Of a DNA stretch of 64,000 nucleotides, positions 47,800 through 64,000 are shown piece after piece (position 1 is the first letter of the stretch; each line of letters starts with the position of its first letter). The DNA lies in NCBI GenBank assembly GCA_033442325.1, contig JAWQFM010000005.1:1071058-1135057 (forward strand), in the 5' to 3' direction. The translations under genes were made by a program, and so were the position numbers. Source of the DNA: Salpingoeca rosetta (Eukaryota > Protista > Choanoflagellata). The notes under the pieces were generated by a model, which ran no database searches, was not told where the DNA came from, and worked only from the letters and a program-made list of their open reading frames with translations.

Positions 47800-57917
<10,118 letters not shown>

Positions 57918-58779: not shown

Positions 58780-58945
58780 CTAGACCTTGCCAAACTCAAA
58801 CCAGTTCCCGGCATCTCTCGTTTTCCTGAGTAGAAAGAGCAAACACAATCAGCGTCAGAGCAGCGACTGGCAAGGCAGGCATAGATGTTGGAGAAGACGC
58901 ATTTGCGTGTATGTGGGTGTGTGTTCGTACACGTGTGCGTGTGTG

Positions 58946-58985
<40 letters not shown>

Positions 58986-59094
58986 TGTGTGTGCTTGTGT
59001 GTGAGGGTGATGTGCACCACTCACGATCGAGATCTGCTGGGGCCGTGTGGATGAGAGGAGCTCGAGCGACGGCGGTCGCCTACCAACACCGAAT

Positions 59095-59142
<48 letters not shown>

Positions 59143-62100
59143 ATATGCAGTGTGCAGTGAGTTGCTGTTCACCGTCGAGGACGAGAGAAGTTCGCAAGTA
59201 CGAGAGACGTTCGCGAGCACACGATACAAGGGCAGGTGCCGGACCTTTGTCTGAGGGCATCAAGGTGGAGTGGGACGAGTTTGAGGAGCGCAGAAGCGAT
59301 GATGGTCCAATGGACTGGCGGCGTCCACTTTCGTCGTTCCTGCACTCACTCAAACACACACACACACACACACACGCACGCACACACACACATACACATA
59401 CAAATACACACACACATGCAGCTTTGGGTCAGAGGATCGTCATGTGAACAGGCCAAGTAAGCAGTTTATCATGACTGGTCTCTTTGTGCAAAAACTGGGA
59501 GACATACCGGTTTCGCTGCTTGGAGTTATGGAGGGAAGGCAGTGATTTGGAAAGGAGCGTTTGACAGGGAGATGTGGATGAGCAAATGGCGACGGGGTGC
59601 GCAGAGCAGACTCACAGGGCAGAGATGTTTACACATACGCAAACAAACAAACAAACAAACAAACAAACAAACAAACAAACAAACAAACAAACAAACAAAC
59701 AAACAAACAAACAAACAAACAAACAAACAAACAAACAACAAACAAACAAACAAACAAACAAACAAACAAACAAACAAACAACAAACAAACAAACAAACAC
59801 ACGTAGACATATGCAGTGACAATGTCCGTGCAAACCTGTGTGGACGAAGGATCCAGCACGGACGCTGCGGTAGACGAGAGCGAGCGTGTGTAGAGCCCAC
59901 GTGGAGAACTGGACGCCCGCAATTCGTCCGCAGCGGAGGTTGACATGTGCAGTCCCCGCTTGTGCTTAATCTGGCAGAACACGATGCGTGGCACCAACCG
60001 AAGCGAAGTGAGGTGTGCATGACATTCCCACAATTCGCGCAGAAACACACACACACGCACACACACACGCGCGCGCGCGCACGCAGACACCAGTAAAGCA
60101 CGCGCCAGCTCAACTCAAACACGAGACACTCAGTACAACCACCACCACATCGACAAGACAGCGCTGTCCCCACCTGCACGCCGCGTCGGGAGGCGCCGCT
60201 GATTGAAGAGCGCCACGTGCGCGAGAACGGCACTTCGCCCTCCAGCGCTGCACCAGACGCAGATGATGACAGCTTGCTAGCGCCGCTACCACCACCGCCG
60301 CCGGCACTGACACCGCTGCCACGCGAGGAGGATGGTGTCTTCTTGCGGCGAGAGCGCGATGGCGTGTGTTCGTCCGCTTCGCCGCCATCACCACGGCCGG
60401 CGTCGCTGCTGCGAGACGCGTGCGTGTGTCTTCGTCGGTCCCCGCGATCACGGCTGCGGTGTGACGGTGACTTGCGCGTGCGCTCTCCACTGCGATGGCG
60501 CTGCCTGCGTCCGTCACCATCCGTCGGCTTTGCGCCCGTGTACGCGCGGCTGCGGCCTTTCCCCATCGGGAAGGTGGCGTCCAGGGCCGGTGCGCCGGAA
60601 AACGACGCCGACAGCGCCGAGGACGATGGCGTCATCACGGACGTGTGTGTCACATCGTCCATGCCAACTTCGGGTGCAGTGGACGGACGATCCGCGCCAA
60701 TGAACACGTCCAGCGCTGTCCTTGCGCGTGTTCGGAAGCTGCTGTTTGACCCAATGCTCTGGTTAAGGGCGCTTCCACTCGTCGCCATATGCTGCTGGTG
60801 GTGGCCATTGGACATGGCCGGGAGCTCCCCTTGCGGCTGCTGTTGTGGCTGTGGTTGTGATTCTTGTGGTTGTGGTTGTTGAAACACCTCCTGTACGTCT
60901 TGCGCGTGCAGCTCCTCTTGTTGTTGCAGCTGCGCTTGTTCCTGTAGGAATTCGTTTACCGTCTGCACATCGCTCGAGTCCCGACTGTGCGTTTGATGGT
61001 GCGCGCGACCAGCGTCACTGCGGTGCATCGTGTCAGCGCGCGCGCGTGTTTTTGCTGCCCCCGCCACATCCTCCATGCTGTGTTTGTACAGCTCCGGGTC
61101 CGAGGTTGAGATGTCGCCGCTGTCTGCGATGGAGGAGCGCTTTGCAATCATCACCGGCGACGCGTTGGCCGTGGACGACCCGCTCTCGTCCCCGCCGCTG
61201 CAGACGGACGGACGGACGGACGGACGGAGGAGGAGGAGGAGGAAAGTGAAGGGAAGGAGGCGAGGGAGTCGTAGTTGGGGATGGAGAGGTGGAAAGAAAA
61301 GCAAAAAGAAGGAAAGGGGGGGGGAGATGTTGCGAACAGGAAACGTGAACGAGTTAAGGAGTGAGTGAGTGAGTGAGTGAGGGTACAAATGAAGGAAGCA
61401 AGAACACAAGACAAGGCAGACAGTTATAGACATTGCAGCGAAGGCACTCCATCGTCAGCATGCGACAAAATGTACTTGTGGAGATCAGGGGAGCGCGTCG
61501 ATGGGGCTGGATCTGGTGTGGTTGAACCGCCACTCTTGCCCTGCAAACACAGCCAGCGCAGTGAGTGCAGTGCATACAGACATTGTGGAAACAACGCACG
61601 TCACGTGCGCCTCTCAAATAGAAAGAAGCAAGCTGCGCACGTGCAAGCACAACCAAACAAAGCAAGCAAGGCACAAACAAACAAACAGAACAACAAAACA
61701 AACAAACAAACAAACAAACAAAAACAAACAAACAAACAAACAGAACAGAACAGAACAGAACAGAACAGCAAAACAAACGCACAGGCCACCTTCTTTTTGA
61801 AGAATCGAAAGAGCTTCTTCTTGCTTCGGGCCTGTTCCAGTTCATCCGTCAACGCCTCGCGCTCCTTTGTCCAGTTGTGCACCTGCTGTCGCAACTCTTC
61901 CTCCTTGTCCTTCAGCTGCGTGGTGCTCTGCAGTGACTTCACAAGCAGGTCTTGGTTTTGCTTCAGCAAGCTGTTAAGTTTCTCCACGTATGACGCGTTC
62001 TCTGCCTCCAAACTGGCCTTGATCTTCGTCAGCAGCTTCACTTTGTCCTGCTGCTTCAACTCCGCCGCGCGATGCTTGTGTGCTTCCCGCTCTGTGCGTG

Positions 62101-64000
62101 TGTGTGTGCGTGTGTGTTGGCGGGGGGGGGGAGGTCGGGTGAGTGTGTACGTGGGTGAATGAATGGATGTCCAATTTCGAATGCGCTTGCGTGAGCGTTG
62201 GGATTTGACGTTCGCCTCACAAGCAAGGTCACACGTGACCGGAACGGCAGCTGTCCATCACGTACCGAGTGTGCGCGCCTGTCGTCGCAACTTGTCGCAT
62301 TCGCTCACAAGCATCTCATTCTGCAGCAAACAGCACCCAACAAGAGTACATTTGCGTGAGCGTGGATGATCAGAAAGGGCATCAAGCGAAGCATGGTAGT
62401 CTACACACACACACACAGACATACACACACGCACACACACACGCACGCACACACACCGCACACTACAGGTCGCCTAATCAACAGACCCTGCTCACCATGT
62501 TGCTGATGTTGTCTAGTTTCTCGCGAAGACCAACAACCTCGTTCCTGTCATTGAGGAAACGCGTGGGCACAAGTGATGTGACATGTGATGGCACGCGTGT
62601 CGTGCGAGTGTGAGTCATGACGCGTTCATTCCACAAATTCCCATCATGAACAAAGAAGACGCGAGCGCGCCAAACACACATAAACACATACATGCACACG
62701 CACACACACATACACACACAGACACACGCGCGCACACAGAGGCACACACGTGTCTGATGATGTTGCGCGTGCTGCCTCGAGGGACTGCTTGAGCATGCTG
62801 TTCTCGCTCTTCAGTGCACTCAGTTCTGCTTGCAACAGCGACACGGCCGACACAGGTGACGACTGCTCGCTTGCGCCATCCTGCAGTGGTGGTTGAGATC
62901 GGGAGGTGGAGATGTTGCGTGCAGTGCGATGAAGACAGGTGGTGAGCGTGCATGTAGTGGCGAGGAACATCAACACGGCGCAACGCAACAGCAACGTGAG
63001 ATGAACCGATTTGTGCGGATTATTCAGCACACGCACACGAAGATTGAACAACAACAAACAACAACAACAACAGCAACAACAAACAACAAGGACAAGTGGC
63101 GCGTACGAATGCGAATTGGGAGGAAGATTTGGTGGCGCGGTCTGTCTGCGAGACGAGGGGACTGCCGGTTGCGCTTGAGAGCTTGCTGGATGACGGGGCA
63201 CGACGCGTGGCGAGCGGCGAGCTGTCTCGTCGGCTGGCAGCAGAGCGCAACAGCTCAATGTGCCGCTTCGCAAGCGCCATGTCCTGCACCATCGTGGCGA
63301 GGGGCGGTGGTGGGCACACGAGAGCATGTGGTATCAGCCGTGGTGGTTCACAACGACGACGACGACGACGAGGAGGAGGAGGAGGAGGAGGAGGAGGAGG
63401 AGGAGGAGGACGAGGAGGAGGACGAGAAAGAGGAGGTGAAGAAGAACGAGGAGGAGGAGGAGGAGGAGGAGGAGGAGGAGGAGGAGGAGGAGGAGGAGGA
63501 GGAGGAGGAGGAGGAGGAGGAGGAGAAAGAAGAAGAGAAGGAATGTACGCGCACACACACGCAGACACACGCAGTAGGGCGTGCGCACCTGCTTGAGCTG
63601 TTCGTTGTGTTCTGTTGCCTCCTTGAGCCGCGCCTCCAGCGTCTTGATGCGCCCGTCCTTAAGTCGAACACCGCGCTCAAACACATCCCCTGTCACCACG
63701 TGTTCGCATTGAGGGGGGGGGGGGCGTGGTGGCATGCGCAATGAGCAATGTGCATGCAGGTGAGCGGGATTGCGCGCATATGCGTGTGTATGAAGCACGA
63801 ACGTATGAATGTCTTCTTGTGGGCGGGTGGTGCCTGCGGTTTGCTTCGTCGCAATGCACTGTGCAGTAGTTGTCTCCACCACCACCACTACCACCATTGT
63901 CACCATCGTCATCGTTGTGCGTACCAAGCTTCTTCTCGATGCTGAGCGGGGAGGCAGAGGCCGCGTTCGACTTGAGTGACGCCACCTGCTCCTGCAATGA
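58780..64000 (-). CDS. CCDC88: Girdin/Daple (CCDC88, Hook-related) family protein, 3' part; 5' end lies outside the window
   Basis: Coiled-coil exons end in [40 protein letters not shown]...[10 protein letters not shown]...[11 protein letters not shown] (62091-61790), matching recalled Girdin [39 protein letters not shown]...RRQKEKLEEKI. A disordered tail follows, with exons 61540-61476, 61197-60174, 59970-59836, 59515/59518-59508, 59339-59173 (or 59245), 59079-59025 and 58825-58780, ending [11 protein letters not shown]-stop. Confidence 0.82.
59640..59798. repeat. (AAAC)n tetranucleotide microsatellite, intronic
   Basis: About 39 AAAC units with two single-base slips, in the intron preceding the 8/11-nt microexon of the CCDC88 gene. 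Confidence 0.9.
63354..63525. repeat. (GAC)n/(GAG)n trinucleotide tract, probably intronic
   Basis: Lies between the CCDC88 exon ending ...NEQLKQ|gtgcgc (~63588) and the next exon (~63337 or below). Confidence 0.75.

Follow-up and report, generated by a model that had tools for sequence, protein, structure and literature searches.

A GBA-like segment in the tail of a choanoflagellate CCDC88 protein and its bearing on the age of the Girdin/Daple signalling module

Did the coupling of CCDC88 proteins to G-alpha subunits arise within animals, or before them? The question is raised by a 64,000-nucleotide stretch of the genome of the choanoflagellate Salpingoeca rosetta (contig 5:1071058-1135057 of the 55.4-Mb assembly, hereafter the window), which encodes part of a CCDC88 protein, PTSG_01822 (XP_004997802.1; UniRef F2TZ22; 1300 aa), with a peptide resembling the GBA motif (named for G-alpha binding and activating) in its tail. 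Animal Girdin and Daple use this short motif to activate G proteins independently of a receptor. As in vertebrate Daple (CCDC88C) and Girdin/GIV (CCDC88A), the peptide lies in a disordered tail between the coiled coil and a PDZ-binding C-terminus. It comprises residues 920-934, encoded at window 60936-60980 on the minus strand; an earlier note on this DNA had reported it at 60930-60980, an interval slightly too wide and given without a strand. The argument draws on these features of the window:

60936-60980, minus strand: GBA-like motif, residues 920-934, from the translation and as the top window of the animal-GBA matrix
60945-60962, minus strand: core TVNEFL, T926-L931, matched in 0.075% of shuffled tails, with V927/F930/L931 as an i, i+3, i+4 hydrophobic triad
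60174-61197, minus strand: large 3' exon, residues 847/848-1188, the disordered tail, with AG acceptor and GT donor
61790-62092, minus strand: last coiled-coil exon, residues 725-825, from protein mapping
61790-61828, minus strand: basic patch ending the coiled coil, a landmark common to all CCDC88 tails compared
58780-58824, minus strand: last exon and TAG stop, predicted Daple-type PDZ-binding C-terminus, from protein mapping and comparison with animal ends

The reading we find most likely, at about even odds, is that the S. rosetta CCDC88, a pre-metazoan one, holds a genuine counterpart by position of the GBA motif, near-canonical in sequence and plausibly able to bind G-alpha. On the predicted features of the protein, a Daple-like layout (HOOK domain, coiled coil, basic patch, GBA-like helix and PDZ tail) is present in a choanoflagellate. 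Because a near-complete motif sits at the matching place in this CCDC88, the Girdin/Daple signalling module may be older than animals.

The protein and its motif

The assignment of the gene to CCDC88, already made in the earlier note, is borne out by several protein-level results. HOOK_N (PF19047) was detected at residues 22-167 with 41.4 bits against a Pfam cut-off of 23.5, and the domain is followed by a long coiled coil, the exons of which could be mapped. The top database relative was a protein of Choanoeca perplexa (EukProt EP00045_P018333, 28% identity), and the next best were animal Daple and girdin-like proteins (E 1e-33, or 1e-51 with a profile), while Hook3 reached only 1e-13 to 1e-15; a distinct Hook-like gene of S. 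rosetta, visible only as fragments, is located on contig 30. PTSG_01822 ends in NWFEFGKV followed by the stop, compared with VWYEYGCV in animal Daple and long Girdin and LWLEYGCA in insect Girdin, and is therefore predicted to carry a PDZ-binding motif of the Daple (EYGCV) type. A basic patch directly after the coiled coil opens every CCDC88 tail compared. Taken by sequence, PTSG_01822 is a CCDC88 orthologue, nearer to CCDC88 than to Hook1-3, and CCDC88 orthologues have been reported in unicellular holozoans generally (Coleman et al. 2016, PMC4760084). Scans of the genome with the Pfam HOOK and HOOK_N models missed the locus because the domain is split across many small exons, and only the protein-level scan finds it.

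The published GBA consensus is hydrophobic-T-hydrophobic-x-[D/E]-F-hydrophobic, and Coleman et al. for their search used [LIMV]-[TS]-[LIMV]-x-[DEQ]-F-[LIMV] (PMC4760084). The S. rosetta sequence QTVNEFL agrees with the consensus at six of seven positions. As had been noticed from the letters, the single deviation is Q at position 1, and T, V, E, F and L are kept together with the flanking acidic residues. The invariant phenylalanine is present as F930, and position 3, the phenylalanine and position 7 (V927, F930 and L931) make up a hydrophobic side of a predicted helix. Single-sequence AlphaFold2 modelling of residues 880-980 gave, with modest confidence, a helix at 921-952, the pLDDT being highest at about 920-939. 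The segment lies about 100 residues past the basic patch, upstream of the PDZ-type C-terminus, at a position that matches mollusc and vertebrate CCDC88; the earlier note had placed it in the disordered tail past the coiled coil. Because one defining position holds Q, we would not count it as a member of the GBA family, and the claim of a GBA motif stands for the six other positions, the invariant phenylalanine and the hydrophobic triad.

The segment is unusual for a tail of this composition. When the 474-aa tail was shuffled 20,000 times, the six-residue form T-[LIMV]-x-[DE]-F-[LIMV] occurred in 0.075% of the shuffles and a looser form allowing [TS] and [DEQ] in 0.46%, while a flanked form, [DE]-hydrophobic-x-T...F-hydrophobic-x-E, the pattern of which was set post hoc, occurred in none of the 20,000. 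Scoring with a GBA matrix had been proposed as a check, and we built a weighted one from 18 windows, 17 of them distinct animal CCDC88 windows and one the GIV peptide (PMC5561080). With this matrix the S. rosetta motif was the top window of the whole 1300-aa protein (p of 0.002 in tail shuffles and 0.015 in whole-protein shuffles).

CCDC88 tails inside and outside animals

Reviews place the gain of the GBA/GEM module by CCDC88 in vertebrates (PMC10943482, PMC8042451). Coleman et al. found GBA in 5 of 43 invertebrate species, sponges included, and, having screened five unicellular holozoans with the strict pattern, reported it back only to sponges (PMC4760084); the S. rosetta sequence fails that pattern. 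Our comparison agrees with theirs and contradicts a vertebrate-exclusive module, since invertebrate CCDC88 proteins carry the full GBA motif (EMLTLEQFLSES / ELLTLEQFLRES) together with the PDZ tail VWYEYGCV. Girdin-like CCDC88 proteins of Mytilus have NNEMLTLEQFLSES about 60-80 residues past the basic patch and end in VWYEYGCV, and their GBA segment EMLTLEQFLSES extends the motif-plus-PDZ layout beyond vertebrates. A transcriptome cluster in Logan, a public assembly collection, contains SPGSELLTLEQFLRES (SRR29271456, SRR29271480). No paper joining GBA, CCDC88, Girdin or Daple to choanoflagellates or Salpingoeca was found in the searchable literature, which accords with the earlier note's impression that the case had not been described.

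Vertebrate Daple and Girdin share with S. rosetta the string S-[DE]-hydrophobic-x-T-hydrophobic-x-E-F-L-x-E, including the phenylalanine, the threonine and the i/i+3/i+4 hydrophobic face, on a helix that is predicted in S. rosetta. They differ from it in having V or L in place of Q at position 1 and EES in place of QEQ after FL; moreover, S. rosetta is not an animal, its motif is known from sequence, and its Gi/o-like G-alpha has T248 and F258 for K248 and W258. The invertebrate proteins (Mytilus, sponges) are single-copy like that of S. rosetta, with the motif about 60-100 residues past the basic patch and a C-terminus of the form [FY]-G-x-V, a layout that predates the vertebrate gene duplication; their motifs satisfy the full consensus, while S. 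rosetta misses position 1. GBAS-1 of Caenorhabditis elegans has V at the third motif position and the same V..FL triad, and V657, F660 and L661 are each required for its binding to GOA-1 (G-alpha-o), every alanine substitution abolishing it (PMC4760084). Unlike the S. rosetta protein, GBAS-1 is not a CCDC88, its motif is taken as convergent, and its partner GOA-1 keeps K249 and W259.

The best alignment path between S. rosetta and Daple pairs the motif segment with SSEMVTLEEFLEE and DVQEVF with LLSDYF. Marsupial and frog Daple have a second GBA-like element (ISLQQFLLEAESL / ITLQEFLLEAESL) 27 aa past the GBA motif, which is degenerate in eutherians (DDLLSDYF), and the position of DVQEVF, +26 from T926, matches the place where Daple has LLSDYF or ITLQEFLL. 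The correspondence, made by eye, is weak, and the feature is entered as a candidate only:

60882-60899, minus strand: candidate second helix DVQEVF, residues 947-952, 26 aa past T926

Conservation in other choanoflagellate and filasterean CCDC88 proteins had been suggested as a further check. The comparison comprised three sequences: S. rosetta, C. perplexa and a 1007-aa homologue from a Tara Oceans marine metagenome (TARA_SAMEA2621643_METAG-scaffold_5328, hereafter the Tara homologue). The animal matrix selected SPGSQLLGLNEILQEG as the top window of C. perplexa (13.4 bits; p<0.0005 in tail shuffles and p=0.0025 in whole-protein shuffles) and SPGPDRIGLNQMIREG as that of the Tara homologue (p about 0.01 in tail shuffles). 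The two windows start some 60 residues past the basic patch and resemble the animal SPGSELLTLEQFLRES. Across the GBA region the Tara tail can be aligned with that of an animal (shuffle p=0.003); an alignment of the C. perplexa tail with the Tara tail likewise reached p=0.003. Set side by side, the segments read VNEFLQE in S. rosetta, LNEILQE in C. perplexa, LNQMIRE in the Tara homologue and LEQFLRE or LEEFLEE in animals, in a register that was cut by hand, so that the alignment is partly by construction.

A co-linear segment is thus present in both of the other homologues, whose SPGS prefix is that of animals, but the threonine and the 'invariant' phenylalanine are found, among the three non-animal sequences, in S. 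rosetta only. C. perplexa and the Tara homologue also differ from S. rosetta in a second element, ALEFLL or ALQFLL, 45-50 residues further on (C. perplexa 897-916, Tara homologue 853-872), which recalls the second GBA-like element of Daple. A full-length MAFFT alignment had offered this element as the counterpart of the S. rosetta motif; it was dropped, the animal matrix having chosen SPGSQLLGLNEILQEG. Judged by these comparisons, CCDC88 tails would have conserved this segment since early times. Since T and F occur in animals as well as in S. rosetta, and animals are the sister group, T..F would be the more parsimonious ancestral state, although two lineages are a thin basis for it.

Further sources added little to the sample. 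A second alignment-based protein search gave no further non-animal homologue, a metagenome scan gave one 1.2-kb HOOK-domain fragment without a tail, and the ESM Atlas gave no usable match. The Tara homologue is encoded in a single open frame, and because this frame is uninterrupted over 3 kb, it suggests an intron-poor choanoflagellate relative as the source. In addition, although the tails of S. rosetta and C. perplexa are unalignable elsewhere, both contain the island SGASRRG, seven identical residues (947-953 in C. perplexa) that might form a conserved site for phosphorylation or docking:

60180-60200, minus strand: island SGASRRG, identical in the S. rosetta and C. perplexa tails

Candidate G-alpha partners and competing explanations

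A scan of the genome revealed only two G-alpha genes. One is Gi/o-like (contig 20:1148000-1152000, minus strand), its first exon being closest to G-alpha-i and its alpha-3 exon closest to G-alpha-o, and the other is Gq-like (contig 5:585000-588500, plus strand), with W258 kept and A at position 248. A third match at about 2.36 Mb of contig 5 was rejected as an ARF-type GTPase. The determinants of GBA binding in the groove between switch II and alpha-3 are W211, F215, K248, L249, W258 and F259 (PMC5454376, PMC10943482). Among the residues important for GIV binding, the Gi/o-like subunit retains W211, F215, L249, N256 and F259.

If the S. rosetta motif does act on G-alpha, it would do so as a short amphipathic helix of the disordered tail, inserting its V927/F930/L931 face into the groove between switch II and alpha-3 of GDP-bound G-alpha, as in Girdin, Daple and GBAS-1. 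The most likely partner would be the Gi/o-like subunit on contig 20; docking might modulate nucleotide exchange or the release of G-beta-gamma independently of receptors, and the PDZ tail would localise the protein. The broader proposal, that a GBA helix and a PDZ tail on a HOOK/coiled-coil scaffold were already functional in the common ancestor of choanoflagellates and animals and still link the S. rosetta CCDC88 to a Gi/o-like G-alpha, we put forward tentatively and think it rather less probable than positional homology.

A number of results weigh against homology with GBA. The published regular expression has no match in the S. rosetta tail, Q at position 1 leaving the published patterns unmatched; the matrix score, although the highest in the protein, is low (8.9 bits, compared with 40-52 for true animal motifs); and the seven core columns alone are not significant in whole-protein shuffles (p=0.19). 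Alignments of the whole S. rosetta tail with any other tail were no better than those with shuffles. The sample of non-animal sequences is small, and in both other members T is replaced by G and F by I or M. On the side of the partner, the Gi/o-like G-alpha has T for K248 and F for W258, states tied to weak GBA binding. The weak binding of GBA motifs to G-alpha-o is attributed to positions 248 and 258; K249M weakened the binding of GBAS-1 to GOA-1, and W259F had no such effect (PMC4760084). T248 and F258 would therefore speak against strong canonical coupling. The idea that a full Daple-like signalling layout predates animals is accordingly kept for the layout as such, which is present in a choanoflagellate, and is weakened by the G/I/M variants and by the absence of K248 and W258.

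These points bear differently on two other explanations. A chance resemblance, that is, a short functionless motif in a long disordered tail rich in Q, E and S, would account for the p of 0.19 of the seven-residue core, and short motifs of this kind yield tens of false positives proteome-wide (PMC4760084). It also fits the isolation of the tail exon, for which protein searches detected no homologue: in a HMMER search of 1.84 billion representative proteins the one true match was PTSG_01822 itself (identical at residues 848-1188), and the sole other match was spurious. A search of the PDB with the motif region likewise gave only a His-tag/TEV-site expression artefact and did not recover the GIV peptide, the query being too short to be informative. 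Such an accident would, however, have had to produce a six-residue core found in just 0.075% of shuffled tails (the post hoc flanked form in 0 of 20,000), at the expected place in the expected protein, with co-linear related segments in two other non-animal homologues, and we consider it improbable.

More serious is the possibility that the segment is a conserved helix of CCDC88 tails whose ancestral partner was something other than G-alpha, either another protein or an intramolecular contact, with GBA function a later animal exaptation and the T and F of S. rosetta incidental. C. perplexa and the Tara homologue retain the spacing of the hydrophobic residues and the flanking sequence (SPGS, L.N[EQ].[LI].E) but neither T nor F, in keeping with this explanation, and it is also favoured by the altered groove of the S. 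rosetta Gi/o-like G-alpha and by the loss of GBA with retention of the PDZ tail in most invertebrate CCDC88 proteins. It leaves the presence of T and F in both animals and S. rosetta, the more parsimonious ancestral state given their sister-group relation, as a coincidence, and the V/F/L triad is exactly the G-alpha-contacting face of the known cases. We rate it well above chance resemblance but doubtful, and positional homology with GBA remains the reading that we prefer.

If positional homology holds, the origin of G-protein activation independent of G-protein-coupled receptors would lie before animal multicellularity, and the strict GBA pattern would under-detect old or divergent motifs. 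Should the module be both ancestral and functional, the view of a 'vertebrate innovation' would be explained by ecdysozoans and other lineages having lost it repeatedly. Because S. rosetta is open to genetic manipulation, its G-protein coupling is directly testable, and the G/I/M variants of the other non-animal homologues form a ready natural specificity series.

Gene structure and neighbourhood

When XP_004997802.1 was mapped to the window and a further 10 kb upstream, it gave a gene of about 33 exons with its start codon about 5.9 kb past the window end and a TAG stop at 58780-58782; the HOOK domain likewise falls beyond the window end. The motif lies in an open frame of 642 codons, the coding portion of which is the exon 60174-61197, flanked by a canonical cag| acceptor and |gtgggg donor. 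Eight RNA-derived-looking runs contained 0.48-0.54 of the words sampled from 59300-62300. Exons account for about 0.53 of this interval, in agreement with the share in the runs, and about two thirds of the exonic bases belong to the motif exon, which is therefore very likely expressed. The remaining exons in the window, all from protein mapping, are:

59836-59970, minus strand: exon, residues 1189-1233
59243-59341, minus strand: exon, residues about 1236-1268
59024-59079, minus strand: exon, residues 1268-1286
62267-62320, 62496-62543, 62749-62880, 63107-63283, 63589-63687 and 63923 to beyond the window end, minus strand: further coiled-coil exons

Residues 1234-1235 (RN) of XP_004997802.1 are not encoded at the exon junction at window 59243-59347 (minus strand) of this assembly; a minor discrepancy in assembly or annotation, perhaps a 6-bp AGGAAC repeat, may be the cause. 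Microsatellites of the types (GTTT)n, (GT)n and (CA)n crowd the introns, at window 59640-59800 and 61600-61760 as well as in many others. Exons encoding a formin FH2 domain are located at window about 55700-57200 on the plus strand, converging tail-to-tail with the CCDC88 gene.

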